Source of the DNA: Monocercomonoides exilis PA203
Taxonomy: Eukaryota > Protista > Preaxostyla
Assembly: GCA_001643675.2 (NCBI GenBank)
Contig: LSRY02000003.1
Span: forward strand, 2,108,001 to 2,172,000
Reading direction: 5' to 3'
DNA: 64,000 nucleotides
Made by a program: the position numbers and the translations under genes. Below, piece by piece: positions 10,180 through 55,800 of this stretch (its first letter is position 1; each line of letters begins with the position of its first letter). Below the pieces are notes generated by a model that saw nothing but the letters and a program-made list of their open reading frames with translations, made no database searches and was not told where the DNA came from.

Positions 10180-10560
10180 TCTTTCTTGATAAATTTTGAA
10201 GAATAGATAAATGTGATGGCACACGACGAGAAAGAACAGAAACAGGAAATGGAAGAAATGCATGGGACAATAGGCAAAATGGAAGAAGAAGAACAATTTA
10301 TGTCTGCTCTGATGCCTGAAATGCTTGACAAAACGAAAATGAATAATAACGAATGAAGAAAAGAAAAACGACAATGGAAAATTCTATGTTGCTGTTAAAG
10401 CATATGAACTGTTGCAAAGAGCTGAATGGAGCAAGGATTGGTCGTTTTGTCAATCCTTCACTGAGTAGAAAAATTGGAAAGATGATTGTTGATGAAGAAG
10501 AGAAGGATGAAAAATCACTGATTGTCCTTTTCGAATGATGTTTTTCATCGCATGATTGAC
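10180..10560 (+). pseudogene. Fragment of an expanded oxymonad-type uncharacterised helical protein family (mirror copy at ~23406-23786, minus strand)
   Basis: Broken frames read EKEQKQEMEEMH..MEEEE and KKTTMENSMLLLKHMNCC..SLSRKIGKMIVDEEEKDEKSLIVLFE, resembling from memory a Monocercomonoides family (EEKKMSMENAILLLKHVGYC..SLNKRFEKMII). Confidence 0.55.
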
Positions 10561-11935: not shown

Positions 11936-14230
11936 TCAATAATATTTGCCAACGTTCTTCACCTTCTTCAGAAAACCCATCGCGTTGTGTGTCCTCTTGC
12001 AAGGCATCTTTGATAGCCGACAATACATTGCTTTGATGCCAAGAATGTTTTCCACGCATTCATTGTCAGCTGTGTGCCCGTTGAGAAATATGAATAAATC
12101 GACATTCCAATCACCGAATGCTTCTGTTCTGTCGTGCCCAACAACCGAGTTGTCTTTCTGAGCGATGCTTGTCATGAAAGTGAACAAGGGTTCCTTCACA
12201 GAAGCGACAAATGATTCACACACAAAATACATATCTCTTCCGACACTGGCCTTGTTGGCTGAAAACACGATATTGGTGATGGAAAAGGAGGATTCTGACA
12301 CTTGTGAGCCTTCATTGAACTCAACCATGAGAGCACCGCCTCTTCCTCCAGAACTTGTATCCTCGCTCACAGAGCAGGTGGAGAAATTTGTGTCACTCAC
12401 TGAAAAGGAGTTGGCAGGGGCAGATGAGGCGAATGAGATGCACCCGCCATTGGTGGCAGTCTGTTGGCTGAATTGTTCTGAGTTGATGTTGGTGATGGTG
12501 CAGTTGGCGAGGGAGAGGGAGAGGGCAGGGGAGGAAGCAGAGGAGAGGACACAGCTGGTAGGGGTGGCTGTGGAGGTGATGTGAGTGATGTTGGAGGAAT
12601 TGAGGGTGAGGGGATTTGTGAGGGAGGTGAGGTGGAAGATGCTTTGGCTGTTGAGGGTGAGACTGGTGATTGCTGTGTGGTTGAGGGAGAGGGAGCCAGC
12701 AGTGAGGAAGAAGAGGGGTGTTTTGATTGGTGTGGAGGTTGTTCCGGTGATGGTGGTTGTGTTGAGGTTGAGGGAAGGGGAGTTATCGGAGAGGTGGAAG
12801 AGGATGGGAGTGATTTGATTTGTGGAGTTGTGGGCGATGGCGAGGGCAGAGACTGTGAGGGAGCCCTGGGTCTGTTGGAAGAGGGCAGACGAGGCAGATG
12901 GATCTGGTGAAGAAGATGTTGATGATGATGACAAGGATGAAAATGATGATGCTGATTGTGATGACTGTGAATGTGAGTTTGATGGTTGAGGAATGCCACT
13001 GGAGGCGATGATGGTGGCAGTTGTGCCATTTCCAGTGATTTTAGTGTCAACTGCGCTGAAAGTGAGTGTTTGAAGAGGAACAAATATTGAGGTGAGGAGG
13101 GTGAGAGAGGCGTCTTGGAGGAGGGAAATGAAGCCGTTGAGGGCATACTCGATGGTGGCACATGGGGTCTGTTGGGGTCTGCCACAGACATCAGCATCAG
13201 TTCCACCATTTGCAACGATTTTGTTCTGGGCAATGAGGGGGAGCCAGCCATTGTACACTGCATTGTCAGCTGTTCCTGCGTTCCATACTCTTTTTGTTGG
13301 GGTTGTTGAACCACAATTTTCAAACGGAGATTGTGTGATGCTACTGCCATTGAAGAACACATCATTTCCCCTGCCATTTTTGGCAGTGTTGCCATCAAAG
13401 AAACAGAATGTGATGAATTTTACTCCATTCATCCACGTGAAAGTTGAATAGAAGAATATGGCAGCACCTCCATAATTGGTAGAGGCAGTCAGATTGTTAT
13501 TAATAAATTGGCAATCATTGATTGAAAACTGATTTGGCTTATTGGTTGGAGGATCATAAAATGTGAGAGAACCAGCAGAATCTCCACCAGAATTTGAGAT
13601 GCACTTGCATTTGGTGAACAAGAATTGACCGTTTGAGGTCATGTTATTGATCCTAAAATACCAACCAGTTCCACACCAGTTTGTTATTGAACAGCTTTCA
13701 ACTCTGTTTTCTGAGAATGAATAAACAGAATTTGATTGTGGCCAGCCAACATAAGCAGCTCCGCCATGCAATGCCAAACAACTTGTGAAATTGGATTTTA
13801 CGATGTTGACGTTTAATAAATATCTGCAAAACAACGCCCCGCCAACATCACCACTAGAACAATTGTCGAATGAACAAGAAGTGATTGTGAGATTTGCATC
13901 CACACAATTAACATAAAGTGCACCGCCATATTCATTTCCACTGTTTGAATTATTCCATTCGCACCATTCGAATCTGTGGTTGTTCTCATCAAATGAAGTC
14001 AGTCTTCCAGGTTTCACTCTTTGAGATTCAGTTCCTACATGAACAACAGCAGCATTTGGTGAAGAGCGAGTTTGGTGGAGAAAAGAGGTGTTGAAGGCAG
14101 AGAGAGAAGTGAATGGACTGTTGAGATTGGGGAGGATAGCACCATCGATGGGGTTGTGAGTTGTGTGAATGAGAAAATCAATATGAAAGGGGGGAAAGCT
14201 ATTCTGAAACAACAGAAATGATAATGACAT
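11936..14230 (-). CDS. Cassette B: 764-aa Pmp-like beta-helix protein with Ser/Thr-rich extension; ATG present but no clear signal peptide; probably 5' and 3' truncated
   Basis: Uninterrupted ORF; GGAL/FxxC repeats; continues past the KITGN breakpoint where five paralogues stop. Confidence 0.75.
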   Translation of the reverse strand: MSLSFLLFQNSFPPFHIDFLIHTTHNPIDGAILPNLNSPFTSLSAFNTSFLHQTRSSPNAAVVHVGTESQRVKPGRLTSFDENNHRFEWCEWNNSNSGNEYGGALYVNCVDANLTITSCSFDNCSSGDVGGALFCRYLLNVNIVKSNFTSCLALHGGAAYVGWPQSNSVYSFSENRVESCSITNWCGTGWYFRINNMTSNGQFLFTKCKCISNSGGDSAGSLTFYDPPTNKPNQFSINDCQFINNNLTASTNYGGAAIFFYSTFTWMNGVKFITFCFFDGNTAKNGRGNDVFFNGSSITQSPFENCGSTTPTKRVWNAGTADNAVYNGWLPLIAQNKIVANGGTDADVCGRPQQTPCATIEYALNGFISLLQDASLTLLTSIFVPLQTLTFSAVDTKITGNGTTATIIASSGIPQPSNSHSQSSQSASSFSSLSSSSTSSSPDPSASSALFQQTQGSLTVSALAIAHNSTNQITPILFHLSDNSPSLNLNTTTITGTTSTPIKTPLFFLTAGSLSLNHTAITSLTLNSQSIFHLTSLTNPLTLNSSNITHITSTATPTSCVLSSASSPALSLSLANCTITNINSEQFSQQTATNGGCISFASSAPANSFSVSDTNFSTCSVSEDTSSGGRGGALMVEFNEGSQVSESSFSITNIVFSANKASVGRDMYFVCESFVASVKEPLFTFMTSIAQKDNSVVGHDRTEAFGDWNVDLFIFLNGHTADNECVENILGIKAMYCRLSKMPCKRTHNAMGFLKKVKNVGKYY

Positions 14231-14952
14231 TGCTGATGTTCAATCCTGATTGGAAAAAACAATTTTTGTTTTGAATTAATATTTTCGTTTTTCGAGTTTT
14301 CTTTTTCGAGAGCAGTTTCTGAATGAATGAGTGATGCAATGGGAGAAAAAGAAAAGGATGCTTGTATGATGTTCTGTTTTGCTCGAAGTTCTTTTGCATT
14401 TGTTTGTGTTTGGAACGACGAAATTATTCATAGCCTGGAATGTGTCGTTTTTTGTTTTCTATCACTCAGAAAGTTATTTCGTCATTTGCGTTTATCACAA
14501 TGAAACCAATTGAAGATTGGCGAAGCATGCATTCTATTCTCAAATTTCTTTTTGATCTTTCTGTGTTTCACCGTTGTTTTGTGCTCATTTTTTCTTTTTT
14601 AAAAAAGCATATTCTTGTTGAAGATGAGCCGACTTCGCTTGAATGAAACCTGTTCATTTGAATAAAAAGCACCTATTCGCATTTCATCAAGCGTTGACTG
14701 AACGTCATTTTCTTATTTATTTATAATATTAATTTTTTTTTTTTTCAAAGAAAATTTCACTTTTGTTTCTCCAGTGAACTGCAGATCATCAAAAGATAAA
14801 ATTTTATAAACTATTTTTGAAGAAAGTCATTTCATAATCAAAAAGTTTCACAGTTCTTTTCACTTGATTTTTTTTCCCCGATTTTTATCGCATGACAAAG
14901 ATGTGAACAATAGTTATTTTGAATCACTTTGGTTGAATTGCTGATATACACC

Positions 14953-15058
14953 AAAAATAATTCTAATTCGAAAAAAAATAATTCAATTTCGAAAAAAAAT
15001 AATTCAAATTCGGAATTTATTAATTCAATTTCGAAAATGAATATTTCAATTTCGAAAT
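14953..15058. repeat. ~21-bp tandem minisatellite (~5 units, aaaataattcaatttcgaaa-like); mirror at ~18910-19015
   Basis: Adjacent degenerate units with TTCGAA cores and no unique spacers. Confidence 0.75.
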
Positions 15059-15498
15059 CCATCAAAAACTGAAATTTTTAATTTTTCTCGAGAATGGATT
15101 TCTGAAAAGTTCAAGTTATTTTTTAACCAATCAAATTATATTACTTATAGAAAACTGTTTTTTTATTGCAACAATCAATCAATCAATTTTTTAAAAATTT
15201 TTTTCATTTTCGAAAATCATCACTCAAATAACGATAATTTTATAAAAAATTCATTCTAATGAATAACCAAATAAAAATCATTAAATTTTCAATCACATTT
15301 ATTGAATTATTTCATCACAATAATGTGATTGTTTCATTGGCAAAATTTTGAATAATATCGGTTTTAAACATGAAAATGAATTTCTTTCCTTTTCAAATTA
15401 ACTTCAATCAATAAATCTTCATTCAAAATGAAAGAAAATTTTTTTATGAAAATGCATCATTTTTCAAATATTGATAAACAAAATTTGCTGATGAGATA

Positions 15499-18469
15499 TT
15501 CGCAATGGAGCGAATCTACAAACGCAAGGAGCAGGTTTGCTCCTCAATAATGAGAATTAATCACGATTTATGTGTGGTTTAAGATCTAACTTCGCCAATA
15601 CTCAAATTCAAAGTTGATCCTAATTGTCCGCAAAGAAAATGAAGCAACAACCTGTTATTATGAAACATAGAGACGGAGATGGAAAAGAATCAGATCTATA
15701 TTAGAAACTGGAAAGAGAGGAAAATATTATTGAAAAACTTACTAGGATCTGAGCATGAAATACATCATCAGGAATAGAAGAGAGTGCAAAGCTGATAAAG
15801 TCTAACAGCGAACCGCGCATTTTGAAGATTTAATATCAATAACAGAAGCTGAAAAACATAGTGAGATAATTATTAAAATTAGAAAAGCGTTGTGCCACAT
15901 TACAATTTCAGAAATTGAAACCACGAAAAATCGTGAGATATTTAAACAAAATGAAGATATGATATTTTTTAGACTTTTTTAAAGAATAAAACTACATAAT
16001 ATTTTTTATTTATTAGGATTAAGAACCGCGCTTCGCAGCGAGATGATAAAAGAGATAGAAATCTCTGAAAATCGATTGGCTTTGCAAAGGAAATATTGAC
16101 AAGCTGTATTACGAAACAATATTAAAACTGAATAAGTGAAATATCATCAATTTATAATTCGAAATGATACGTTTCATTATAAGAGAAATTATCACATAAG
16201 GGAAACCGCTAAATATTACTGGACTGAGAGAAAAAAGAAATTTGTGGATCGTCGCGAGATTATTGTGGAGTAACAAACCACTGAAGATCAAAAGAGTTAA
16301 TACAAAGAGAGAGCTGAGTTTGCTGATAGATAAGGATAGAGAAATAAATTGAGAGAAATTGTGATTTGATGATACGGTAAGAAACAAAACACTTTTGCGA
16401 GATATGTGCAGATATAGAGACTGCGAAATTTCGCGAGAAAATCGAAGAGGTGAAATTCGCGAAGAATCGCGAGGAGAAGACAGAGAATGAGACTGCTGAA
16501 GACCGCGAGAGGCGGATACAGAAATAAGCCGCATAGTATGGAGTGATGAAACTCGGAGAAGACTCCACCTACCTCAGCTAAAATTCTTATGGACATACTC
16601 AGCTGGACTTAGAAGAAACGGGACGATGCACTTAGAGTGAAGAAAGTCGCAGAGATATTTCAAACATTCGCACCGAGAAGACTTGATTCAATTTCAGACA
16701 CGATTACTCCGGTGCACTGCGGAACTATTTATAAACTATCCTCTCTGAGAAGGAAGAGAGAGAAAGAAATGCAAGAAGATGAGATAGTGCAAGTCCATCT
16801 GTTCCTGAGAAACATCGGATTGTCCTCTAAAGAGATGAGAAATGAGGACTTGAAGTAACCCCCAGGAGACGTTATGGGAGTTATAATGGAAGAGAAAATA
16901 TTCCATGAAAGTTCCTCTTTTAAGCATGGCGAGAATACGTCGGAGCGAAGGACATATCAGCAGTAATACTGAGAAATCAGAAGTGTGAAAGAGATTCGTG
17001 GAGGGCACTTCGAAGATTTTAACAATTCTTGGATAAAGAAAGAATAGATGAAACAGATCCCTCACAGAGAAAGATACCAAATGGATTGTGGCAGAATTTA
17101 CTGAAACGCTTTCAAATACTAACCTGTCTTGTGGAGTGATTTATCAGACAGTTCGAAAAGTACTAAATTCTATTAATCTATTCAGAGAGACTAAGATTGA
17201 TGTGAAAGACATAGAAATATTTCTTAAAACCTATGTTGGGGAGAAGCAAAGAAGAGGCAAACGATACAAATCGATGTGGGATTTGACAATCATCACGAAG
17301 TGGGCCGAAACCACCTACGACGCAAAGGACAAACGAACACTCCAGAGGAGAGCCCTCATCCTCACCATGATCTTTGGAGCGTTAAGGCCAGCTGAGCTGG
17401 AGAGATTGAGAAATGAGTGTTCCATATTGAAAGGGAATACAGCATTAATGGAAGTGCAGATAAAGATAACAAAAAGGAAACTATTACAATCGAAATTAAC
17501 GAACATTCAAACGCACTCATCGATTCAGAAGAAATGCTCCAACATTGGTTTAATTTCACCAGGATAACCTTTTAAGTTGAACATGTGTGGTTAATATAAG
17601 AGAAGGTCAGCCTGCAAATATGCAGAGAATAACAGAAGAGTTTGAAGCTATTCAAAAAGGGTATGAAATACACCATCCTTTGACCGTGTTCTCGATAAGA
17701 CATAAAGTTATAATACACATATCAAGATGAAAAGGTTTTGATTGGAAAGCGAGAAATACGCACGCAAGAGGGGAGCAAGGATTAAGAGTGGACCGAAAAC
17801 TTGAAACATTTAACGAGTTCAAGATATGTTATGGATCCTGTTGACAATCGACTTTCAAGAACCCCCTATTGGAGAAGAAGAAAAGTTGGATATAAGAAGA
17901 GGAAGGAAGGATATGTGAACCGAGAAAGCAAATTCAGAGATGAAAAATTGCACCAAATATATATACATATATTTATCAGAAGCTGGCGGAGAAGAAGATA
18001 TGAGAAAAGGAAAAAAGTTAAAGAGACTAGATTTACCGAGTTGAGAAGAGAGAAAGCAAAGATAAATAGCTCAGTCACAGAACTCCTCATCCCGACCACC
18101 CTAATGTCGGAGAACACCCCTCATAATTCCCAGCAGCGGAAGCGAGCGGACTGGAAGCAAACACACTGCCTAACAGAGAAAGAAGGGCACAGACAGGAGG
18201 AAGCATGGAGTAAGATATCTGGATTGGATGATAAAGAACTCAAGATAAACGAATTCCCGGTCGAGAACGCCTCGGAAACACCCCATGAAAAGGAGGGAGT
18301 AGAGACAGGAGCCGCACCTTCATCCGCAGACTCTCCAAACATCCGCCGCACGATGACGTGCTAGGCAGGAGGGTTTAAGATCAGAGGAGAAGAAAAAGAA
18401 AGGGATTTCGAGACTCATTATAAAGGAGCAAACCTGCTCCTTGCGTTTGTAGATTCGCTCCATTGCGAA
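15499..18469 (+). mobile_element. E1: decayed TIR-bounded tyrosine-recombinase element (DIRS-derived, no RT seen), forming the spacer of the large palindrome
   Basis: ~56-bp TIRs (15499-15554, 18414-18469) homologous to E2 TIRs; interior colinear with E2 apart from deletions; YR remnant. Confidence 0.9.
16900..17830 (+). pseudogene. Tyrosine recombinase pseudogene of E1
   Basis: RYKSMWDLTII..LQRRALILTMIFGALRPAEL matches the E2 YR; frameshifts and stops downstream; decayed FSIRH at ~17688-17702. Confidence 0.85.
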
Positions 18470-21400
18470 TATCTCATCAGCAAATTTTGTTTATCAATAT
18501 TTGAAAAATGATGCATTTTCATAAAAAAATTTTCTTTCATTTTGAATGAAGATTTATTGATTGAAGTTAATTTGAAAAGGAAAGAAATTCATTTTCATGT
18601 TTAAAACCGATATTATTCAAAATTTTGCCAATGAAACAATCACATTATTGTGATGAAATAATTCAATAAATGTGATTGAAAATTTAATGATTTTTATTTG
18701 GTTATTCATTAGAATGAATTTTTTATAAAATTATCGTTATTTGAGTGATGATTTTCGAAAATGAAAAAAATTTTTAAAAAATTGATTGATTGATTGTTGC
18801 AATAAAAAAACAGTTTTCTATAAGTAATATAATTTGATTGGTTAAAAAATAACTTGAACTTTTCAGAAATCCATTCTCGAGAAAAATTAAAAATTTCAGT
18901 TTTTGATGGATTTCGAAATTGAAATATTCATTTTCGAAATTGAATTAATAAATTCCGAATTTGAATTATTTTTTTTCGAAATTGAATTATTTTTTTTCGA
19001 ATTAGAATTATTTTTGGTGTATATCAGCAATTCAACCAAAGTGATTCAAAATAACTATTGTTCACATCTTTGTCATGCGATAAAAATCGGGGAAAAAAAA
19101 TCAAGTGAAAAGAACTGTGAAACTTTTTGATTATGAAATGACTTTCTTCAAAAATAGTTTATAAAATTTTATCTTTTGATGATCTGCAGTTCACTGGAGA
19201 AACAAAAGTGAAATTTTCTTTGAAAAAAAAAAAAATTAATATTATAAATAAATAAGAAAATGACGTTCAGTCAACGCTTGATGAAATGCGAATAGGTGCT
19301 TTTTATTCAAATGAACAGGTTTCATTCAAGCGAAGTCGGCTCATCTTCAACAAGAATATGCTTTTTTAAAAAAGAAAAAATGAGCACAAAACAACGGTGA
19401 AACACAGAAAGATCAAAAAGAAATTTGAGAATAGAATGCATGCTTCGCCAATCTTCAATTGGTTTCATTGTGATAAACGCAAATGACGAAATAACTTTCT
19501 GAGTGATAGAAAACAAAAAACGACACATTCCAGGCTATGAATAATTTCGTCGTTCCAAACACAAACAAATGCAAAAGAACTTCGAGCAAAACAGAACATC
19601 ATACAAGCATCCTTTTCTTTTTCTCCCATTGCATCACTCATTCATTCAGAAACTGCTCTCGAAAAAGAAAACTCGAAAAACGAAAATATTAATTCAAAAC
19701 AAAAATTGTTTTTTCCAATCAGGATTGAACATCAGCAATGTCATTATCATTTCTGTTGTTTCAGAATAGCTTTCCCCCTTTCATATTGATTTTCTCATTC
19801 ACACAACTCACAACCCCATCGATGGTGCTATCCTCCCCAATCTCAACAGTCCATTCACTTCTCTCTCTGCCTTCAACACCTCTTTTCTCCACCAAACTCG
19901 CTCTTCACCAAATGCTGCTGTTGTTCATGTAGGAACTGAATCTCAAAGAGTGAAACCTGGAAGACTGACTTCATTTGATGAGAACAACCACAGATTCGAA
20001 TGGTGCGAATGGAATAATTCAAACAGTGGAAATGAATATGGCGGTGCACTTTATGTTAATTGTGTGGATGCAAATCTCACAATCACTTCTTGTTCATTCG
20101 ACAATTGTTCTAGTGGTGATGTTGGCGGGGCGTTGTTTTGCAGATATTTATTAAACGTCAACATCGTAAAATCCAATTTCACAAGTTGTTTGGCATTGCA
20201 TGGCGGAGCTGCTTATGTTGGCTGGCCACAATCAAATTCTGTTTATTCATTCTCAGAAAACAGAGTTGAAAGCTGTTCAATAACAAACTGGTGTGGAACT
20301 GGTTGGTATTTTAGGATCAATAACATGACCTCAAACGGTCAATTCTTGTTCACCAAATGCAAGTGCATCTCAAATTCTGGTGGAGATTCTGCTGGTTCTC
20401 TCACATTTTATGATCCTCCAACCAATAAGCCAAATCAGTTTTCAATCAATGATTGCCAATTTATTAATAACAATCTGACTGCCTCTACCAATTATGGAGG
20501 TGCTGCCATATTCTTCTATTCAACTTTCACGTGGATGAATGGAGTAAAATTCATCACATTCTGTTTCTTTGATGGCAACACTGCCAAAAATGGCAGGGGA
20601 AATGATGTGTTCTTCAATGGCAGTAGCATCACACAATCTCCGTTTGAAAATTGTGGTTCAACAACCCCAACAAAAAGAGTATGGAACGCAGGAACAGCTG
20701 ACAATGCAGTGTACAATGGCTGGCTCCCCCTCATTGCCCAGAACAAAATCGTTGCAAATGGTGGAACTGATGCTGATGTCTGTGGCAGACCCCAACAGAC
20801 CCCATGTGCCACCATCGAGTATGCCCTCAACGGCTTCATTTCCCTCCTCCAAGACGCCTCTCTCACCCTCCTCACCTCAATATTTGTTCCTCTTCAAACA
20901 CTCACTTTCAGCGCAGTTGACACTAAAATCACTGGAAATGGCACAACTGCCACCATCATCGCCTCCAGTGGCATTCCCCAACCACCAAACTCACATTCAC
21001 AGTCATCACAATCAGCATCATCATTTTCATCCTTGTCATCATCATCAACATCTTCTTCACCAGATCCATCTGCCTCGTCTGCCCTCTTCCAACAGACCCA
21101 GGGCTCCCTCACAGTCTCTGCCCTCGCCATCGCCCACAACTCCACAAATCAAATCACTCCCATCCTCTTCCACCTCTCCGATAACTCCCCTTCCCTCAAC
21201 CTCAACACAACCACCATCACCGGAACAACCTCCACACCAATCAAAACACCCCTCTTCTTCCTCACTGCTGGCTCCCTCTCCCTCAACCACACAGCAATCA
21301 CCAGTCTCACCCTCAACAGCCAAAGCATCTTCCACCTCACCTCCCTCACAAATCCCCTCACCCTCAACTCCTCCAACATCACCCACATCACCTCCACAGC

Positions 21401-24400
21401 CACCCCCACCAGCTGTGTCCTCTCCTCTGCTTCCTCCCCTGCCCTCTCCCTCTCCCTCGCCAACTGCACCATCACCAACATCAACTCAGAACAATTCAGC
21501 CAACAGACTGCCACCAATGGCGGGTGCATCTCATTCGCCTCATCTGCCCCTGCCAACTCCTTTTCAGTGAGTGACACAAATTTCTCCACCTGCTCTGTGA
21601 GCGAGGATACAAGTTCTGGAGGAAGAGGCGGTGCTCTCATGGTTGAGTTCAATGAAGGCTCACAAGTGTCAGAATCCTCCTTTTCCATCACCAATATCGT
21701 GTTTTCAGCCAACAAGGCCAGTGTCGGAAGAGATATGTATTTTGTGTGTGAATCATTTGTCGCTTCTGTGAAGGAACCCTTGTTCACTTTCATGACAAGC
21801 ATCGCTCAGAAAGACAACTCGGTTGTTGGGCACGACAGAACAGAAGCATTCGGTGATTGGAATGTCGATTTATTCATATTTCTCAACGGGCACACAGCTG
21901 ACAATGAATGCGTGGAAAACATTCTTGGCATCAAAGCAATGTATTGTCGGCTATCAAAGATGCCTTGCAAGAGGACACACAACGCGATGGGTTTTCTGAA
22001 GAAGGTGAAGAACGTTGGCAAATATTATTGAATGAGCAGACAAATTGTGAATTTATGTGCAAGTGACGGTAAAATCGAAGAAAGTTGGGGAGATGGCACA
22101 CAAAATTGAAGAAAACATCTCATTTTTGCATTTGATTGATTAATCACCATATATCTTCTGTAAATTCTGTTGTTTCATAGAATTTTTCTTTGAACATGTC
22201 TTTCCTCTAAATAACTTTCCTTCATCGTCTCATCTTTGATTTCTCGTTGAAGGCATTTGGCATTGTGTGATCTGAAGAAGAACATCATTTCAATCATTTA
22301 TTCCGTTCAAGAATTGTTTCGATAATATGCTTTTTTTCATCTGAGCCTCTTTCATCTACCAAACAAAAAAGGCAAAGTCGTCCACCATTTTTGATTGCAA
22401 GCCTGCTGCTCCGCTTTTCTTGATTCGAAATCATATCTATTGTTGTTTAATTTCAGCTGATCTTTCCTTCTTCTTTTTGATGATTCATCTCACTTCGCAT
22501 TGGATCATACTTTTGGCATTCAAATATTCAAGCTGTTCAATCAGCAATTTTTGACAAATTCAACTGAAAATTGTTTCATTAGCATTTCTTCTTCTCGGCT
22601 TATCAATCGCTAAGTAATCCTTCTTTTCATTTTCCTTTTACAATTCAGATGAAAAAAGACATCTGCATAAATTCATTTTTTTCAATGATACTTGTGAAGA
22701 AGTTAAGAATGCTTTGTATGATGTTGTTGACTGGCAAAAAATATCGTATTTGATAAATTGACTTCAGAAGGAATTGAAAATTGTTACACAAAATTTGAGA
22801 TGGATAAACTGCAATTCATGAATTAAGCTGCATATCCACAAGTCATTGGCTGACTTTGAATTGTTGCTCCGACTTTTCATTTTGAAAAGAAAACCCCAAT
22901 ATTTTCAAATTCTTCTTCTTTATCTTCTTGTTACCACTCCAATTAAAACTCAATCGTTCTCTTTCTTCTTTTCCCCTCTCATCTCCTCAACTTCTCATTT
23001 GTTCTTCTTCTCATTTTGTTTTCTTCCTCCAACAATCCTATTCCAAAGCCACTTCTTTTCCCTTTCTTTTCCAATTCTCTGGTCGCCTCTCTCGCCAAGC
23101 ACAGCCGCTCTGCAACGGTCTCTTCCAAATATTTTTCATTGAATCATCTGTTCACAAAAAATATCCTCAATTAAGCAAACAATGCCAAGCTCAGTGTGGC
23201 CGAGGCGCTTCTGATGACGTCTCGTTCAATGCCATCATTTTGAAGAAACCTAAATTAATCAACACAAAAAATAAAAAAAAATATTGCAATCATCAATTAT
23301 GAAACAAGTGAAATAATACATTCTATTTATCAGCGTCACACAACCTCAAAACAGTCCTTTCCGCTTTTTGACGTTTATTCAAGCTATTTTTCAACAAATT
23401 GCAAAGTCAATCATGCGATGAAAAACATCATTCGAAAAGGACAATCAGTGATTTTTCATCCTTCTCTTCTTCATCAACAATCATCTTTCCAATTTTTCTA
23501 CTCAGTGAAGGATTGACAAAACGACCAATCCTTGCTCCATTCAGCTCTTTGCAACAGTTCATATGCTTTAACAGCAACATAGAATTTTCCATTGTCGTTT
23601 TTCTTTTCTTCATTCGTTATTATTCATTTTCGTTTTGTCAAGCATTTCAGGCATCAGAGCAGACATAAATTGTTCTTCTTCTTCCATTTTGCCTATTGTC
23701 CCATGCATTTCTTCCATTTCCTGTTTCTGTTCTTTCTCGTCGTGTGCCATCACATTTATCTATTCTTCAAAATTTATCAAGAAAGAAAGAGAGATAGAGA
23801 GAAATCATCCCAATCATCACAAATTCAAGGGAAACAATGCTCTCAAACCAGTGAGTGCTTTCAATGCGCCCTTCTCCTGCATTTTTGCAAATCCACAGAA
23901 ACACAGAAACCATCCCGAATTTCCCATTCACATTCAACAAGAACATCCTTCAAAGGCGGAAACAACAAAAAAATAGAAAACGCAAAATAGTCATAAAAAT
24001 ATAAGCATTCACACCATCAAACTGAATAATGACATTTTTAGCAAGATATTTCACAGAAAAAACAATGATTTAACTTTTCAAGTTTATTGTTATGGATGTT
24101 CTGATCGAGTTGTTTTCTTTGAGCAAAATTAACCATTGGAAAGATGATAGATCGGCAAACGAATATTTTCTGCAGGATAGGCGATATTATTTTGTGCGTT
24201 GGTACGAGACAGCGACGGCGGGGAATTGATGATGGAATTGGGCGAGATGATTTTTATGAAAAGCATCTTTGAAGGAAATTCATTTTCCAAAATAATGAAT
24301 GAAAAGTTTGATGTTTGCATTTTTTATTATTCTTGTTCATTTTAAAGATGTTTCCATCTGTGGCCTTCTCAGAGTGCAAGAATCTGATAAATTATATAAA

Positions 24401-25544
24401 TGGCCATTCCTTTGCTTTTCTGAGGAGATCATAAGAAGAGAGCTATGCCGAGAGACAATCAGCAGATGTGAATTGCAGATTTTTTGTATTCAGTTGGGAG
24501 AGGGGATGAAAATAAATTCAATTTCAAAGCATTTTGATGAGAGCGAAATGGAATGACAACAATTGGACAGTTATTGGAAAGAATAAAATTCGGAGATATT
24601 TTTTTCAGGAAAAAAAATGGATGAAAACATAGAAAGAAGGATATTTAAGGAGAAAAAAGGATGATGGAGAAAGGAGCACAGGGAAACAATGGAAAAGGAG
24701 AATGGCAGCATCAGTGATTGGGCAATCTTCTACTTTTGCAATAGAGAGGGTGTATGTGTTCTTTTGAGGAATTTTGATAATCAATGGAAAACTAATTATT
24801 TTTATGTATTTTTTAAATCATTTTTCCATTCCAGCAAACAGCATTTTTTATGTTGAGCGTCATTCCTGGTGACAATCCATTTCAAGTTGCATTTTTGCGG
24901 ATTATATGGTTTCTTCTTCTTCTCCTCCAATCTCTTCATTGACGAGATTTTTTAAGTTTGACTGATGGAAAGAACTCCTTCTTCGTATTTGAGAATTTGT
25001 TGTTCAAATAACCATAAAATTCTCATGTTGCAACATAAAATAAATCTTCCTTCTCTTGCTGCAGTTGTCTGTTATGAAATTTGAATCTGTTCATTATGCC
25101 TGTATTTTCTTCAAATGAGTCTTGCTCGCCTTTGCCGCCCAGCTCGTCCAAAGAGCATCATCGAGCTCATTTCATTCCATTTCTCTCTCAGATGCCCCTT
25201 CTTCTTTTTCTTCTTTCGTTTTTTTTTTTCATATCTGCTGCTGCGAGAATTTTGTTTGCGAAAGCAGTCATTGTGTTGAACTCTGATCATTCAGCATTAA
25301 CTTCATCATCATCATCATCATCTTCTTCTTCTTCTTCTTCTTCTTCTTCTTCCTCATCTTTTTCTTTTATTTCTTTTTCAACTCTTTCAACTCCTTTAGC
25401 AGCTTCATCTTCTTCCTTCTTTATCTGCCTCTTTTCCTTGCCTTTTAGTTTCTTCAACCATCATCGTCTTCCCATGGATTCCAAAATAAGCCAATGAGAA
25501 CGTTCTCATTCGGAAATATGCAATCCAAAAGCTTCTGTTTCTCC
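18424..25544 (-). repeat. Right arm of the 7.1 kb near-perfect inverted repeat
   Basis: Reverse complement of 8422-15544. Confidence 0.97.
19738..22031 (+). pseudogene. Cassette C: mirror copy of cassette B with a 1-bp homopolymer frameshift near the 5' end
   Basis: C5 at 19774-19778 versus G6 in B; remaining protein identical except IPQPP versus IPQPS; the indel may be a sequencing error. Confidence 0.75.
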
Positions 25545-26977
25545 AGAAGACACATTCAACGCACAACACACCTTCTCCTTTGCATTCTTCTCCTCCTCTT
25601 TCTTCTTCATCTTCTTCGACACTTTTATATTCTTCCTCTTCTTCTTCGTCTTCGTTGTCTTCTTCTTCGTCAACATTTTCTCCTTCTTCTTCTTCTTCAC
25701 CTTCTTCACCTTCTTCAGCCTCTTCCTCCAATTTTTTCTCCATCTTTTATTCTCCTGCTGCTTCTTCTTCATCTTCGCATTCATCTTCACTTGCATCTTC
25801 ATTTGATGCTTTTTGTATTTTCAGAGCCAATGGACAAACATCATTATTTTTTGTTTTTGAAGAGAAAGCAATGAAACCACTCAAAGTTGGAAAATGAACT
25901 GAGGATATCAGTTTTCATTGACAAATAAATGCGAATTGGCCAATATTTTTTATGATCGAAGTTTTTATATTTCTTCTGAATTCAACTTATCAAGGATGAT
26001 ATTTTTGCCAACTGACAACATCATACAAGTCATTTTCATCATCTTCTTCAGAAATGTTATTTGACTAATTGTTCGTCTCTCAATCTTCTCGTCTTCTTCA
26101 TCTTCTTCAAATTCTGTTATTTCTTCTGCGTTTTGTCCTTTCCCCCAAACTCCCCCAACTTCAATTTTGTCATTTTGTTCTTCTTCAGCTCCTTCAATGC
26201 CATTTTCACTCACTGTACATTGGATCAGATCATCGACCTTCTATTGTGTTCATACGCCCCAATATACAGCTCCACAAAATTGAACTGAAAATTATTTCAT
26301 TCACTTTTCTTCAACTCAGCAGATCGATCGTCAAATGTTTCTTCATTTCATTTTTCATTCAAGATTCTCGTGATGAAAAGCCATTTGTTCAAATTCGTTT
26401 CGTTTCGTTTCTTCTTCTTCTTCTTCAACGTCTTTTTCAACGAGCAATAAAAATTGTGATATTATTTTTGTTTCAATAAACAACCCTCGAATTCAGCGCC
26501 AGGCCTCATCATCGATGTCAATTTGGAAACACAAAAAGAAATATCTATTTTATCACAGAATATCAGCTGAAATTATATGATAATAGAAGAGATCCTTAAT
26601 TTTACACGAAAAGCCGATCAGATGAAGCGAAACCAAAAAAGGAAGATGCTTTTCATTCATTTTTCAGTGAATGAAGGAGGCACAGATGAAAAGATAACAA
26701 CATTGAAACAATTTTTGTTTGGAACAAATGATTGAGGTGATGTCTTTCTTCAGATTTCACAATGCCAGGTGCCATAAAGGGAACGAGAGGATGATTAAAT
26801 GAGGAGAACATAATTTTACAGAAAACAAATGATCGAAGGATAATTCTATGAAATGAGAGCCTCTGCAGCTGACAAAAAAGGTGAAGTGAAAATAGCAACA
26901 GTTATTGAAAGTTTTGAAGAGATTGTTGCTATGCTTGGAGAAATGCATTTTGAAGAAAGGAAAACGGATGATTCCAT

Positions 26978-49662: not shown

Positions 49663-50068
49663 ATCTCCTCGCAAATAACCATAATTCTTTATGGTTTTAT
49701 TTCTTTTGAAGCATTTTGAATGTTTTCAAGCAACAATTTAATTCACAATAATTTCAATAAGCAGAATTAGATGGATGATAAAATCATGATTTTTCATTTT
49801 AATTAAATAATTTTTTTGAGAAGTGAGGTGTTAATTCATTGTTCAAAAACAGCTTGAAAATCGATATTCTTCATTTTCGCATTTCAAACATTTTTGAAGT
49901 CGAAGAAGCAGTTATTTCAACAGAGTTAATTGGATCTGAAAAAGTCAGAAAGATAATGTTTCAGTTAAAAATGTCTGTAATATCATCTTAGACTATTTTA
50001 TTTGACATTTGCCACACAGCCATTATTGTGATCGTTACGAGATAAAACTTCACAGTGACAAACGAGTT

Positions 50069-50784
50069 TATCAATAAAAGTTGATAGAACGCAGTGAGAC
50101 AGGATTTGCTCCGAAATAATGAGTATTGGTCACGAATTATTGGCGGTTTAAGTGAGAACTTCGCCCTCCCAAATATGACGTGGAAAAAAGGGAGAGATGA
50201 AAATATTGACAATACCATGTTAAATAATAAAAAGAATATAATGAATTGTCCGAATCACTTCACCGCCAACTTCGCCTTATCGCTTTGGTCACGAAGACCA
50301 GAGGGCAGGGGACATAGCCCCTCGGAGCTGTCTCCTGCAGTCCGTGCAGGGATCTGGAGAGGCGAGTGTTCCAAAACGGAGCAGAAAGAAAAACCATACT
50401 CGCTTTCGCGAGGCGTGGAAAAGAAAACTGCGTGCCCTTTGCTCTGCCTCCCGCTCTTCTGCTGCAGTAACAGAGCAAGTTCGCTCGCCACACTCTGTAT
50501 GGACCAGTCTGACTCTTTTCTTTGCACTTTCTTACCATGAATAAAAGAAGTAAGGTTCTTCTTAACGGTCTCACTAGCTTTCCTGTTTGTAAATACAGGT
50601 TCTGGGTGCGCTTAATATCCCTGGACGGTTTCTCTTTTCCTATCTCCTCTGCTATCTCGCCACTTTTTCCTCGTCCTATACTTCACCATATGTTTCTCTC
50701 TCATCTCGCACCCAGCCGCTCTGAGTCTCTCCATCCGCGTTAGTATTATTTCGGAGCAAATCCTGTCTCACTGCGTTCTATCAA
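50069..50784. mobile_element. M: ~0.7 kb non-autonomous TIR element related to E1/E2, abutting E2
   Basis: Perfect 40-bp inverted repeats at 50081-50120 and 50745-50784; left end continues aataatgagtattggtcacgaattat.ggcggtttaag as in the E2 5' end. Confidence 0.85.
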
Positions 50785-51038
50785 TTCGCAATAGAGCGAA
50801 TATCCGAACGCAAGGAGCAGGTTTGCTCCTCAATAATGAGTTTTGAAATCCCTCATTCTCTTCTCTCCTCTGATCTTAAACCCTCATAACTAGCACCTTG
50901 TCGTGCGGCAAATGAACAGAGGGACTGCGGATGAAGGTGCGACCCCTGTCTCTGCTTCCTCCCTTTCTTGGGGTGTTTTCGGGGTTTCATTGATCGGTTA
51001 CCGGATGTTTCTGTGATATTAACCATTTATCCTGCACT

Positions 51039-52640
51039 TTACTCTCCGCGTTTTTTCCGATCAGTTTCCAGCTTCTTCTGCAAAGCAGTTTGTCTGCCCT
51101 CCGTCTTCTCCATAATGCTGTGGGGAATTATGGGGGATATCTCTTCACCTTTTAGAAGTTGTGCTAAATGGCTCTCATGCTGCGACCTCTTCTCTCGAAT
51201 TGACCCTCGTCTCTTCGATCTCTTTCTCTTGCTCATATCCACTTCTCCCTCAGCTTGTGATGTTTCTTCTGTGTTCTCCTTTGTTCCTGATTCTGTATTC
51301 TCATTTGAGATCTCTTTTCCTTTGCTGTCCTTCTCCGACTTTTCGCCCTTTTCAGCAAGGGGTACTGGGCCTCCGATTGTCTCCAGGATCCATCTCGTGT
51401 CCTGAACTGGTAGCACGGTGTAATACTCCTGGGCTACTCTAGAGCCTGGCGCCCATCTCGCGTTCGCATTAGTTGCTTTCCAATCTGCCGCTTGTTGTCT
51501 TGCCAAATGTGTTATCACAGCGTGTCTTATCGAGTACGCGGTAAATGTGTAGGGCATTCCGTTCTCTCTCAAGACAGCCACTAATTCTTCTTTAATCCTC
51601 TGCAAGTTTGCAGGTTGCCTCTCCCTGATATCGAACCACACATGTTCGTCTCAAAAGGTTATCTTTGTATAACCCATCCAACGTTGGAGCGCTACCACAG
51701 CATCGATGCGTGGATTTGGATGCTTATTTATAATAACCTTTACCGTCTCTCCCCCTGATGTATTTGTTTGTACTTGCATCTGGACTAACTCGTCTTTAAA
51801 TATCGTTGAAACACTTCTCATCCTCTCCAGCTCTGCTGGTCTTAACGCACCAAATATCATAGTTAAAATGAGAGCCCTCCTTTGGAGGGTCTGCGGGTCT
51901 TTCATATCGTGAGTGGCTTCAGCCCATTTCGTGATGATTGTCAAGTCCCACATCGATTTGTATCGATTGCCTCTTCTTGGTTTCTCCCCAACATAGGTTT
52001 TTAGAAATATTTCAATGTCTTTCACATCAATCTTAGTCTCTCTGAATAGATTAATAGAATCTAGTACTTTTCGAACTGTCTGATTAATCACTCCACTGGA
52101 CAGGTCAGTATTCGAGAGTGTTTCGATGAACTCTGCCATAATCCATTTTACATCTTTTGTTGTGAGAGGGTCAGTGTCATCCATACTCTCTCTATCTAGA
52201 AATTGCTTGAATCTTCGCAGCGCTCTCCACGTATCTCTTTCGCTCTTTTGATTTCTAAGTATTGCTGCTGCTATCTCTTTTGCTCCAACGTGTTCTCCCC
52301 ATGTTAAGAAGAGGTCTCTCCCCTGAATATTCTCTTCTCCAGTATAACGCTTATAACCTCTCCTGGGGGTAATTTCCAGCCTTCCTTCCTTATCTTCGCT
52401 CCCGGTATCATGCACTCCTGAAAAGTCCCCAGGGTCTTTATCGAATGCCCAGGCTGCAGTAGCGGGGTCCAGGTCTGCCCCCGCCAGGCTGGTAGAATCA
52501 GAATCGTCAGATCCCTCTGAGCTTCGTTCATCTTCTCTTTCATCACTCGTCCAATGTTTCTCAGGAACGTGTGGACTAGCGCTATGTCGTCTTCTGGTGT
52601 TCCTCTCTCTTTCTTCCTTCTCACGGAGGATAGTCTCCAA
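51039..52640 (-). CDS. Tyrosine recombinase (phage-integrase family, DIRS type) split by one in-frame TGA at 51651-51653
   Basis: ORFs 51651..52640 and 51039..51641 are in the same frame (ITF*DEHVW); catalytic motifs LRPAEL (R), YSIRHA (HxxR-like), ARW, QEYY (Y); helical core-binding-like N-domain; true start uncertain. Confidence 0.85.
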
Positions 52641-52815
52641 GTACTTCCGCAGAGCACCGGCACAATCTGTTCTAAAATTGTATCTAGTATTCTCGGTGCG
52701 ATTGTCTGAAATATCTCTGCGACTTTCTCCCCCCTCAGTGCATAGTCCGGTTTTTTCTAAGTCCGGCTGAGTGCGTCTATCAGCATTTTAGCTGAGAAAT
52801 GCAGAATCTTCTTCA
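52304..52815 (-). pseudogene. DIRS-type RNase H C-terminal tail + adenine-methyltransferase-like domain remnant
   Basis: LHFSAKMLIDALSRT*KKPDYAL (cf. HIPG..N..ADALSR...DY.L), then ILILPAWRGQTW..MIPG..KLPPG; the [DNSH]PP motif appears degenerate (VHTF); overlaps the YR frame as in DIRS elements. Confidence 0.7.
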
Positions 52816-55800
52816 ATTTTCATTACGCTGCACTATGCGGCTTCCTTATGTATCCTCCTCTCGCGGTCTACCGTGATCTCCTGCTCAATATTCTCCTCGC
52901 GATTCTTTGCGGATTTCACTTCTTCAGTCTTCTCGAAAAGTTTCGCGGTTACAATGTCTGCACCTATTTCGCAAAAGTGCACGATTTTTTATCGTATTAT
53001 CGATTTACAACTTCTCTCAATCTCTTTCTCCATCATTTTCTCGTAGTAAACTCAGCTTTCTCTTCATTCAAATTCTTTCTATTAAAAACAATTTGTCACT
53101 CCTCGATTATCTCGCGACAATCCACAAATTTCTTTTTTCTCTCAGTCCAGTAATATTTAGCGGTTTCCCTTATGTGATAATTTCTCTTATAATGAAACGT
53201 ATCATTTCGAATTATAAATTGATGATATTTCACTTATTCAGTTTTAATATTGTGTCGTGACACAGCTTGTCTATATTTCCTTAGCAAAAGTCAATCTATT
53301 TACTGAGTATTCTATCTCTATCGTCTTCTCGCTGCGAAACGCTGTTCTCTGCTCTATCTCTTCTCATAGTCTCGGTATTGAACGCGGTTACTCACTCGTC
53401 TCTTAGTCTCGCGGAAAAGCATGTCTTTCTATTCTCTCTCTTTTCTCATGATCTCGAGCTCGAACTCGGTTTGATTCTTTGTAACTCTCTCCCGAATATG
53501 CACAGCTTCATTTCAAATAATTATCTTGTAACTGCAATGAAATTATCCTTTTATTAAAACATTGCTGTAATATATGTATCGATTATTACAAATATCCTTG
53601 CATAATATAAATATAAATATTTCGTCACTGTATTTATATGTATCTCGCGTAACTGCTCAGCTCTTTTCACAATAAATCTTCTTTTCATATCAAGCAGATT
53701 CTCTATTTATCCCTCTCTCGCTTCAATTCTCTGCACCTCTTTTATTTAATCAAATCATGATCTCGCGGTAAAGTGCGGCTCTCTCTTCTCTTTCTGTCTC
53801 GCGGCAAAGCGCGGCTCTCTTTTTTTTCTATTCAATTTTAGTCTTACGATTAATCACGATTATGTTCATTGTATTTATTTCGATACAATGATTTGTCTCA
53901 TTTTAATTATATATATTCAAACTGTAATCAAATTATTATTGCTATATAATCACTTCTGAATTAATTCACATCTCGCGGCTATGCGCGGATCTTCTTCCTT
54001 ACAAATTCCATCAATATTCTGTTGTTTCTCGTTGGTTTTGTTTAAATTTGAATTCCACAGCATTATATGAATATATCTCTTCAATATTGTATATATTTAT
54101 TATATTGTTTCGAAATTTCATTAGACAGGAAATTCTTTCTCCAAAATAATCTCTCTGCAATTTGTGGATCTATCCTTTTTAATTCTTGCGATATCAAGCA
54201 CTTTCTTAATATATCGATATCTTGCTTCAATACGTTGTTCTTATTCCAAATAAATAAACAAAATAATGTGTAGTTGTATTCTTTTTTAAAGCCTATAGAA
54301 TATCATATCTTCATTTTGTTTAAACATCTCTCGATTTTTTATAGTTTCTGTTTGGACAATTGTCTCGCTGCACAATGTGGCTCTAATTCCAATAATTATC
54401 TCACAGAATTTTATAGCTTCTGTTCTTGATAAAATCTCTTCACAATGTGCAGCTTGCCGTTCGACATCTTCGGCTGTGCACTTTCTTCCATTCCGGATGA
54501 TAAATTTCATGCTTAAATCCTGGTAAATTTTTCACTAAAATATTCAACTTTGACCAGTGTTAAATTTTGATCTAATTCACTTCCATCGCCGTCTCTGTGT
54601 TCTATTGTAACAGGTTGTTGCTTCATTTTCATTGCGGACAATTTGGATCAACTTTGAATTTGAGTATTGGCGAAGTTAGATCTTAAACCGCCCATAATTC
54701 GTGACCAATACTCATTATTGAGGAGCAAACCTGCTCCATGCGTTCGGATATTCGCTCTATTGCGAATTGTTATTTTTCCAGTGTACTACAATTACCTTGC
54801 AAGAAAAATGATTTGTTGTTTTTTTGAATAGATTTTGTATTTGATTAAAGAATGTCTCTTCATTTTGTGCAAATGACAAATATGATAACTTTTGTTCAAC
54901 TTTCTTTTCTTATACGTGTGATTATCGTTAAAATCACATCTTGATTCTGTTCTAAGATTATAAAAACTTTTTTTGCCATTTGTCAAATTAATTTCTTTCA
55001 TATATTTGATGTTTGACAATCGCTTCAAAAGCCAATGGTCGAGATGAATGTGTGAAAAAATTCTTAAAATTCTATATTATCATTTTTCAGCGTTCAGCAA
55101 TATATATTTAACGAAAATTCAAGAATCAGAATTTTTCATTGTCAAATAAAATTTCAAAAAATTTTTCCCATATGTTTATTTTTTCATTAAAATTATTAAA
55201 CTGTTTAAATATTGATTCCATGGAGTTGATGAAATGAACATTCTGTTGCAATCTCTATTTTTCAAATACAACCTAAATGGGATGTTATCACATCGTGTTG
55301 TTCACACATTTTTGTGACTATACCTGGTTGTGATTGTATGTTATGTGACTTTTCACAAAAAAAAAAAAAAATAATAAAAAATTCTTTTTTGAAATAATAA
55401 ATCTAATGAGGATTTTTTTTTTCATTTTGATAATCATTCAAAAATGGCAAATTTCTTTTGAAAAATTCTATTTGTTTGCTTTTGAAATAAAATAAAACAA
55501 TCATGTTCTGATCAAGTTTGTGTTCTTCTTCTAAAAACTGCATTTGCAAGTCTTGCACAGTATTGACAAGTTTCAACTTTCATTTTTGTCTTGTTTCGTG
55601 AGTGGGAACAGAAATTTGATTCAACTGTGACATTTTCAATTTTGTTTGTTAATATGATAAAGTGCATTTGTGACGATATTTTTTCACTTTATGAATTTTG
55701 TTTCATTCAGATTCTTCGAACAAATGTGTGATTTTTTTTTTTTGAAATCAAATTTTTTCTTTCTAAAATTTTGAACAGAAAATTTCCCTTTGAAATCAAC

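Follow-up and report, generated by a model that had tools for sequence, protein, structure and literature searches.

Termini and internal complementary region

The window that we analyzed is a 64,000-nucleotide stretch of Monocercomonoides exilis DNA, and its positions 50081–54766 hold a 4686 bp element, E2, which is an RT-less, DIRS1-like derivative with its coding sequence on the minus strand. The bounds of E2 are marked by ends that are shared with other copies and by unrelated flanks beyond them. The left end, TTCGCAATAGAG..., is common to the copies, and the right end of all 26 copies examined is ...GCGTTCTATCAA. Just outside position 50081, conservation across the 26 copies drops from 0.94 to 0.43. 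The right end lies ~700 bp beyond the feature that the initial annotation had taken as a terminal inverted repeat (TIR), and the bounds given there (50785–54766) leave out 704 bp of the element, down to 50081.

The initial annotation described 60 bp TIRs and no internal complementary region (ICR). An inverted repeat is indeed present: positions 50779–50845 and 54706–54772 are 96% complementary over 67 nt, where none is expected by chance. However, its two arms are the left terminus and the left part of an ICR, and not the two ends of the element. The left terminus (54663–54766, minus strand) contains the left ITR (54669–54745, minus strand), which is complementary to 50087–50165 (79 nt, 86%), and a left extension (54746–54766, minus strand), which pairs with the left ICR only; it forms two small hairpins (z = −2.65). 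The right terminus (50081–50165, minus strand) comprises the right ITR (50087–50165) and a 6 nt extension (50081–50086). The ITRs are also present in other copies of the family. The ICR, which had been mis-parsed as a terminal repeat, occupies positions 50745–50845. Its left part (left ICR, 50785–50845, minus strand) is the supposed right TIR and is complementary to 54706–54766 of the left terminus, and its right part (right ICR, 50745–50784, minus strand) is complementary at 40 of 40 positions to 50081–50120 of the right terminus. Together, the two parts correspond to the right and left ends of the element, joined and read on the opposite strand, and the junction between them is identical across all copies listed. 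Taken as a whole, the ICR folds into one extended hairpin (−26.6 kcal/mol, z = −7.4). A search of Rfam over 49900–54900 gave nothing meaningful, the best match being mir-2300 (E 0.63) over this hairpin. The order of left terminus, left ICR, right ICR, and right terminus is the layout described for DIRS elements (PMC3266345).

A conserved non-coding 3′ spacer (50166–50744, minus strand) connects the ICR to the right ITR in 26 of 26 copies, with conservation of 0.78–0.99 overall and of 0.97–0.99 in a 40 nt block at 50389–50428. In described DIRS elements the ICR adjoins the right ITR. E2 is unlike those described elements in this respect, as ~580 nt of conserved spacer separates the two. The segment 50081–50784, which has perfect 40 nt inverted ends, was considered as a separate 704 bp MITE lying beside E2. 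We rejected this reading because the segment follows the left ICR in all 26 copies and because every cross-checked match adjoins a DIRS body. For annotation, the proper unit is 50081–54766, and the pair formed by the left terminus and the left ICR is unsuitable as element bounds.

We found no target-site duplication in 10 complete copies, E2 among them, in agreement with what had been noted for this element. The terminus of the element is CAA, and CAA directly precedes the left end in three of the 10 complete copies, E2 included. The 3 bp junction rule, which expects the trinucleotide beside the insertion to match the junction of the circle, is loose in this family.

Coding frames and RT-less-specific DNA

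The tyrosine recombinase (YR) frame of E2 (51042–52787, minus strand) is free of frameshifts and contains one in-frame TGA, at 51651–51653, where six other copies have AGA. This nonsense codon is private to E2 and breaks its own YR. The second piece of the split frame alone matched Phage_integrase (Pfam) only at E 0.037. The pieces of E2 score too weakly, and the Pfam identification rests on the intact orthologue of the RT-less copy L002, whose 611-codon frame matched at E 2.7e-10 (40.7 bits, with a cut-off of 27.1). Against PDB sequences, the YR core gave chance matches only (E at least 0.13), and a word-indexed protein search with the YR returned almost only M. exilis proteins.

The YR frame overlaps a 150-codon frame for an MT-like C-terminal domain of pol (52307–52756, minus strand), which is directly preceded by a TAG at 52757–52759 and, before that, by the residues DALSR (52763–52777). 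The orthologous MT-like segment of the sister copy L011 matched the C-terminal domain, downstream of RT-RNase H, of ~150 representative pol proteins, with E values down to 2.5e-18. This match came from an exhaustive search of representative proteins; a word-indexed search gave only M. exilis proteins, and no Pfam family, methyltransferase included, matched the segment. The YR, the DALSR tail of RNase H, and the overlapping MT-like frame that the initial annotation had recognized are all present, with one TGA in the YR and with domain matches obtained through the L002 and L011 orthologues.

The 5′ half of E2 has a different composition. A 5′ leader (54586–54766, minus strand) is shared with autonomous copies and is 79% identical to the full-length C47 copy over query positions 6–187 (~180 nt). 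It is followed on the minus strand by AT-rich non-coding block 1 (53830–54585, GC 26–37%), which is specific to RT-less copies and stands in place of gag; by two units of the family's 36 bp tandem repeat (53761–53829), which are 86–88% identical to the array that separates gag from pol in the autonomous copies; and by AT-rich non-coding block 2 (52779–53760), which is also RT-less-specific, stands in place of RT-RNase H, and contains no RT remnant. Homology resumes at 52778 (query position 1995), at the junction with pol-derived sequence (52763–52778, minus strand), where the last RNase H residues remain. When E2 was compared with an autonomous copy, similarity was confined to query positions 1–187, the 36 bp repeats, and query positions 1995–4692 (87%), and a tblastn search of E2 with pol matched only residues 521–542 (~22 residues) before the MT-like domain. 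Gag, RT, and RNase H are replaced in E2 by ~1.7 kb of AT-rich non-coding DNA. E2 keeps all the cis-acting parts of the family, namely the left and right termini, the ~180 nt leader, the bipartite ICR, and the 3′ spacer.

The initial annotation had recognized neither RT nor gag in ~2 kb of 5′ sequence, and it had named a decayed RT there as a possible refutation of its reading. Searches of the 5′ 2 kb by tblastx and tblastn, with the family's own proteins included, found no remnant of gag or RT, and block 1 had no match to the family gag by blastn, tblastx, or tblastn; for a gag or RT of its own, E2 has no similarity at any level. We rejected the interpretation of the AT-rich blocks as decayed gag and RT because the adjoining segments are 87–90% identical to autonomous copies, whereas the blocks have no similarity at all. 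A 74-codon ORF in block 1 (54286–54510) was considered as a small gag; we rejected this because older copies have stops within the ORF.

Autonomous relatives and spread of RT-less copies

Autonomous copies of 6215, 6288, and 8224 bp (full range 6.2–8.2 kb) share the ends of E2, and the full-length copies encode gag-like, RT, RNase H, MT-like, and YR products. RVT_1 (E 2.8e-27) and RT_RNaseH (E 5.6e-9) were detected in the C47 copy (G000:C47:1733525-1739739), and RT and RNase H domains were likewise found in copy L011. A Pfam search of pol from these two copies detected no integrase domain, and a YR is present instead. The genome contains at least 83 RT loci, 14 of which are stop-free. The initial annotation had offered two alternatives, a non-autonomous DIRS derivative or a retroelement converted into a YR DNA transposon, and had named full-length copies with the same termini and an RT as evidence against its proposal. 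The C47 copy is one such copy, and the existence of these RT-bearing relatives supports the first alternative.

A probe comprising block 2 and the junction (52700–53750) matched at least 35 genomic locations, with identities of 69–92%, and the same junction is crossed in all 14 RT-less copies aligned. Seven complete RT-less copies (4339–5114 bp) have exact family termini, have unrelated flanks on both sides, and lie on different contigs. The earlier suggestion that the RT-less form itself spread is upheld by these results. The nearest sampled relative of E2 is only ~91% identical, and recent movement of E2 itself therefore lacks support. Another way to account for the copies is that the RT-less form never transposed, and that they are relics of one deleted DIRS insertion that was multiplied by segmental duplication. 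Some DIRS copies are indeed segmental duplicates of each other (L013 and L015 have common flanks), and the window is full of large duplications, but this explanation is very improbable in view of the seven complete insertions with unrelated flanks and the number of places that contain RT-less-specific DNA.

At least seven older RT-less copies at different loci share a 144 nt deletion and 1 nt deletions in the YR, which also contains many stops. The RT-less lineage spread with a dead recombinase, which argues against YR-driven DNA transposition and leaves the second alternative of the initial annotation unsupported. In that alternative, E2 would be a DIRS-descended, Crypton-like, YR-only DNA transposon with TIRs of 61–67 nt at 50785 and 54766, and it would move by recombinase-mediated excision and integration. 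The inverted repeat between the left terminus and the left ICR is real, the YR frame of L002 is intact, and a second copy in the window, E1, has precisely this pair as its bounds. However, all copies except E1, whether RT-less or not, run on through the right ICR, the spacer, and the right terminus, and the YRs of E2, L002, and L004, which are intact or nearly so, group within those of autonomous copies and look borrowed. E1 (15498–18470, plus strand) is an older RT-less copy, 81% identical to E2, that forms the spacer of a 17 kb palindrome in the assembly, and its odd ends coincide with the inner boundaries of that palindrome. The initial annotation was correct that this second copy exists, but its layout is not the same as that of E2: it ends at the boundary between the left and right ICR, ~890 bp are missing from its 5′ region, and in its shattered YR there are several frameshifts in addition to at least 11 stops. 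E2 resembles Cryptons (PMC3212892) in encoding a tyrosine recombinase and no RT. Unlike Cryptons, it carries its YR within a DIRS architecture (RNase H tail, MT-like domain, ICR, and ITRs), it has RT-bearing siblings that are 87–90% identical, and the YR has been left to decay in its lineage. The DNA transposon alternative is largely refuted, and we regard it as scarcely credible.

In a tree of the YR region, E2 and the autonomous C47 copy are sisters (support 99). The RT-less copies require at least four state changes on this tree, a single RT-less clade is rejected (p-AU 0.012), and the YR halves of E2, L002, L004, and L036 nest among autonomous copies. E2 is 96% identical to L003 over the 5′ 1 kb and 77–86% identical downstream. 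E2 is a mosaic, with the 5′ half of the RT-less lineage and an MT/YR half that most resembles that of an autonomous copy and was apparently gained from one by recombination. One reading of this history is that the RT-less elements are only partly dependent, obtaining gag and RT in trans, using their own YR in cis, and repeatedly regaining a working YR half by recombination. The nesting of the four YR halves, the intact YR of L002, and the single private stop in the YR of E2 are consistent with such partial dependence. It is nevertheless unlikely, as the older-lineage copies at different loci share their deletion, frameshifts, and stops, and the YR of E2 is itself broken. Selection might just as well favor recombination for the fresh cis signals (the ICR and termini) that it supplies, or might play no part in it.

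Proposed mobilization in trans and comparison with known elements

We propose that E2 belongs, as a non-autonomous copy, to a DIRS1-like YR retrotransposon family of M. exilis and would be mobilized in trans as a retroelement, a reading to which we assign a probability of about 0.86. The architecture, the autonomous partners, the independent RT-less insertions, and the decay of the YR in the RT-less lineage are observed, and the pathway of mobilization in trans is inferred. E2 would be transcribed from its left end and reverse transcribed by the RT and gag of the many full-length copies. The ICR would serve as the template by which both ends are restored and joined into a circle, and a family recombinase would integrate this circle with no target-site duplication. 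The ICR is indispensable, and a truncated DIRS-1 is reverse transcribed by RT supplied in trans (PMC7192593). Reverse transcription of the truncated element was seen in Dictyostelium, but complete trans-retrotransposition could not be demonstrated (PMC7192593).

The M. exilis family resembles DIRS-1 of Dictyostelium discoideum and DIRS1-like elements (PMC3266345) in having gag, a pol with RT, RNase H, and a putative MT-like domain, a YR frame that overlaps pol, ITRs with left and right extensions, a bipartite ICR complementary to both termini, and, in the 10 complete copies examined, no target-site duplication. E2 itself is unlike DIRS-1 in that it has no gag, RT, or RNase H.

Non-autonomous YR retroelements have already been published, namely TOC1 and SIRE. 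TOC1 belongs to the PAT-like, split-direct-repeat branch and not to the branch with ITRs and an ICR. In Chlamydomonas reinhardtii, TOC1 is termed a non-autonomous DIRS retrotransposon (PMC9940879), and a coding-capable DIRS, TOC3, is found in the same genome (cited in PMC9940879). Like E2, TOC1 is an element of DIRS order that has no RT of its own and is variable in copy number, a likeness at the level of description; unlike TOC1, E2 still has a YR pseudogene. SIRE of Trypanosoma cruzi, a truncated non-autonomous derivative of the YR retrotransposon VIPER, is similar to E2 in that the 5′ and 3′ ends of the parent surround an exclusive internal region (PMC6681497). It differs from E2 in being ~0.4 kb long and having no coding remnant, and VIPER differs from the family of E2 in using split direct repeats as its terminal-repeat system (PMC6681497). 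As judged from its sequence, E2 is an element of the TOC1 and SIRE kind, with the termini and cis signals of its parent, no RT, an autonomous partner in the genome, and several independent insertions.

The main value of these results is a correction: a candidate for a retroelement turned DNA transposon is most probably a normal non-autonomous DIRS copy, the ICR of which had been misread as a TIR. M. exilis has a large DIRS1-like family with its structure intact, in a supergroup where such elements have been considered uncertain (PMC3266345). The spread of the RT-less lineage with a dead recombinase is also relevant to the question of trans action by DIRS proteins, and the lineage is visibly a mosaic with its helper. 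We suggest, tentatively and with less than even confidence, that the RT-less lineage has long parasitized autonomous DIRS elements and persists by repeated recombination with its helper, probably through template switching between co-packaged RNAs, which would refresh the 3′ half (YR, ICR, and termini). If this is true, the older copies with dead YRs would be natural evidence that trans action extends to every DIRS protein, even the recombinase, which goes beyond what the Dictyostelium assay could show.

Termini and internal complementary region of E2

The inverted repeat reported in the initial annotation is present, as 67 nt at 50779-50845 that are 96% complementary to 54706-54772. The window contains a third related repeat (50081-50165), and the 40 nt that abut the annotated "right TIR" (50745-50784) are complementary to 50081-50120 at 40 of 40 positions. 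The window is G000:C25:2108001-2172000 of the M. exilis assembly (82 Mb, 101 contigs), which we searched for copies, and we mapped the 3' end by comparing the DNA downstream of the repeat in 26 genomic copies. Homology continued for ~700 bp past the repeat in every copy and then ended at a common stop, ...CACTGCGTTCTATCAA, with unrelated DNA beyond; column conservation was 0.91-0.98 over the last 80 nt and 0.43 just outside 50081. The left end of E2 at 54766 (TTCGCAATAGAG...) is common to every copy from which a left end was retrieved. Because the copies share both ends, we assign E2 to 50081-54766 on the minus strand (4686 bp), and the boundary previously placed at 50785 is wrong.

On the plus strand of the window, 50745-50845 reads [...GCGTTCTATCAA][TTCGCAATAGAG...], a fusion of the right and left termini, in that order, written on the strand opposite the coding strand: the first 61 nt of E2 are complementary to 50785-50845, and the last 40 nt are complementary to 50745-50784. 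The inner parts of the two termini (54669-54745 and 50087-50165) show 86% complementarity, and so extensions of 21 nt on the left and 6 nt on the right remain beyond them. E2 thus has the arrangement of left terminus, left and right halves of an internal complementary region (lICR and rICR), and right terminus that defines DIRS1-like elements (PMC3266345). What had been called TIRs are the left terminus and lICR, and the claim that E2 has no internal complementary region (ICR) is therefore incorrect. In DIRS-1, retrotransposition was shown to require the ICR (PMC7192593). Inverted repeats that meet at a junction should pair with each other, and the ICR of E2 accordingly folds into a single long hairpin (-26.6 kcal/mol, z = -7.4). 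In many copies the 40-mers of the right terminus and rICR match those of E2 at 100% although the spacer reaches only 78-83% identity, which points to constraint on these signals. Within the 3' spacer, a 40-nt block (50389-50428) is conserved at 97-99% among 26 copies; it contains a 5-bp GAAA-capped hairpin between U-rich runs, a fold that alone is not significant (z = -0.6).

Autonomous relatives and the coding capacity of E2

Genomic matches to E2 are for the most part confined to its 3' half. When three of these were extended, they proved to belong to complete elements (6215, 6288, and 8224 bp) that share the termini of E2. An autonomous full-length relative on contig G000:C47 (the C47 copy) encodes, in order, a gag-like frame, a 36-bp tandem array, an RT with YLDD, an RNase H ending in ADALSR, a methyltransferase-like (MT-like) domain, and an overlapping tyrosine recombinase (YR), and it matches the Pfam families RVT_1 (E 2.8e-27) and RT_RNaseH (5.6e-9). 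At least 83 RT loci are present in the genome (72-100% identity), and 14 lack internal stops. Relatives of full length that share these termini thus encode an intact RT, the finding that, according to the initial annotation, would refute its reading and identify an ordinary deleted DIRS.

The array between gag and pol has two units in E2 (53761-53829), ~6 in the C47 copy (L031:1904-2137), and ~62 in L032 on G000:C7 (L032:1904-4153), where it brings the element to 8224 bp and runs in frame with pol, so that 1050 codons stay open. In four copies (L010:1-3324 (+), L011:1-3387 (+), L008:1677-5000 (-), and L013:1-3324 (+)), the YR frame is open for 1108-1129 codons, in another phase, across the entire RT-RNase H-MT frame. 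DIRS1-like elements are known to have long ORF overlaps (PMC3266345), and the T-poor coding strand may account for this one. The autonomous copies L013 and L015 (G000:C1:238664-243663 and 258145-263142) have identical flanks in opposite orientation and are a segmental inverted duplication that includes the DIRS copy.

Alignment of E2 to the C47 copy gave only three stretches, all on the minus strand: query positions 1-187 (54586-54766), the two 36-bp units, and query positions 1995-4692 (52778-50081; 87% identity). Two AT-rich blocks on the same strand (53830-54585 and 52779-53760; GC 26-40%) had no match. In blastn, tblastx, and tblastn comparisons with the family gag and pol, the blocks showed no similarity except to pol residues 521-542, at the junction. 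A decayed RT in the 5' region is thereby ruled out, and the earlier description of this region as lacking a recognizable RT or gag holds. A 74-codon ORF in the first block is whole in none but the youngest copies; in older copies it is interrupted by stops.

The minus-strand YR frame, also described earlier, is open from 52787 to 51042 except for one TGA (51651-51653), which is AGA in six other copies, and contains the motifs ALRPAEL, YSIRHAV, ARWAPGS, and EYY. The two YR pieces of E2 alone match Pfam weakly (E 0.037); the intact orthologous frame of the sister copy L002 matches Phage_integrase above the curated cut-off (E 2.7e-10). DALSR (52763-52777, minus strand) is followed by the annotated MT-like frame of 150 codons (52307-52756, minus strand), which overlaps the YR. 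The orthologous segment of L011 is homologous to the domain after RT-RNase H in pol proteins, with matches to ~150 representatives and E values as low as 2.5e-18; among eight checked, RVT_1 lay upstream in all eight and an RNase H domain in seven. The segment matched no Pfam family, neither a methyltransferase nor any other.

Spread and probable origin of the RT-less form

A probe spanning the second block and the junction (52700-53750) matched at least 35 genomic places at 69-92% identity. Alignments crossed the junction at 52778 uninterrupted in all 14 RT-less copies fetched, including E1, the second, older copy in the window. Seven complete RT-less copies (4339-5114 bp) have the family termini as their ends; their flanks are unrelated and carry no duplication. 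The proposal that the RT-less form itself spread is therefore borne out. In L042 (G000:C26:334800-342300) and L043 (G000:C56:191400-198400), an AT-rich 5' region of the RT-less type is joined to autonomous sequence from about RT residue 91 onward; these copies are intermediate derivatives. The E2 type probably formed in two stages, and the order suggested is loss of gag followed by a second deletion that removed RT-RNase H.

At G000:C48:68688-72795, five tandem copies of a 340-nt piece of the second block, ~0.9-1 kb apart, adjoin another RT-less copy as a small, satellite-like, element-derived array. E1 (15498-18470) is the spacer of a 17-kb palindrome (8316-25650) whose arms are 100% identical and extend 57 nt into E1 on each side, into the left terminus and lICR. 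E1 ends exactly at the lICR/rICR boundary and lacks the 3' spacer and right terminus. This structure fits fold-back priming, or a break followed by exchange at the inverted repeat of left terminus and lICR; alternatively, an error of assembly may have produced it.

When a tree was built from the MT/YR region of RT-less and autonomous copies, six RT-less copies including E1 formed a deep, fully supported clade; E2, L002, L004, and L036 nested among autonomous copies, with the C47 copy as sister of E2 (support 99). The RT-less label requires at least four changes (starred branches), and forcing the RT-less copies into one clade was rejected (p-AU 0.012). YRs of the deep clade are heavily broken: each matching segment holds 3-14 stops, and there are several frameshifts. 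Seven RT-less copies (four from the deep clade) share a 144-nt YR deletion, and four deep-clade copies share a 1-nt deletion; as these lesions recur in copies at different loci, they date from a time when the lineage had not yet ceased to multiply. E2 is 96% identical to L003, L005, and L006 over the first kilobase and only 73-86% identical downstream. Judged by these comparisons, E2 is a mosaic: its 5' half comes from the RT-less lineage, and its 3' half most closely resembles that of an autonomous element. The most likely reason that its YR is nearly intact is a recent transfer, not selective maintenance.

Proposed mobilization in trans

E2 is best read as a retroelement that would be mobilized in trans. 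Transcription would start from the left end, the RT and gag of full-length copies would carry out reverse transcription, the ICR would serve as template for restoring and joining the ends, and a family YR would integrate the product. We infer these steps from the DIRS-1 model and experiments, in which a truncated element was acted on by RT in trans but complete trans-retrotransposition could not be shown (PMC7192593). The element terminates in CAA; the same trinucleotide stands before the left end of 3 of 10 complete copies, E2 among them, which is only a loose fit to the 3-bp junction rule.

Non-autonomous derivatives have been described before for YR retrotransposons: TOC1 of Chlamydomonas (PMC9940879) and SIRE/VIPER of Trypanosoma cruzi (PMC6681497). 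DIRS1-like elements in excavates have been regarded as uncertain (PMC3266345), and the literature searched contained no mention of DIRS in M. exilis. We conclude that E2 is an ordinary, mis-bounded, non-autonomous DIRS copy, of specialist interest only for its mosaic relation with its helper and for the spread of the form with a dead YR.
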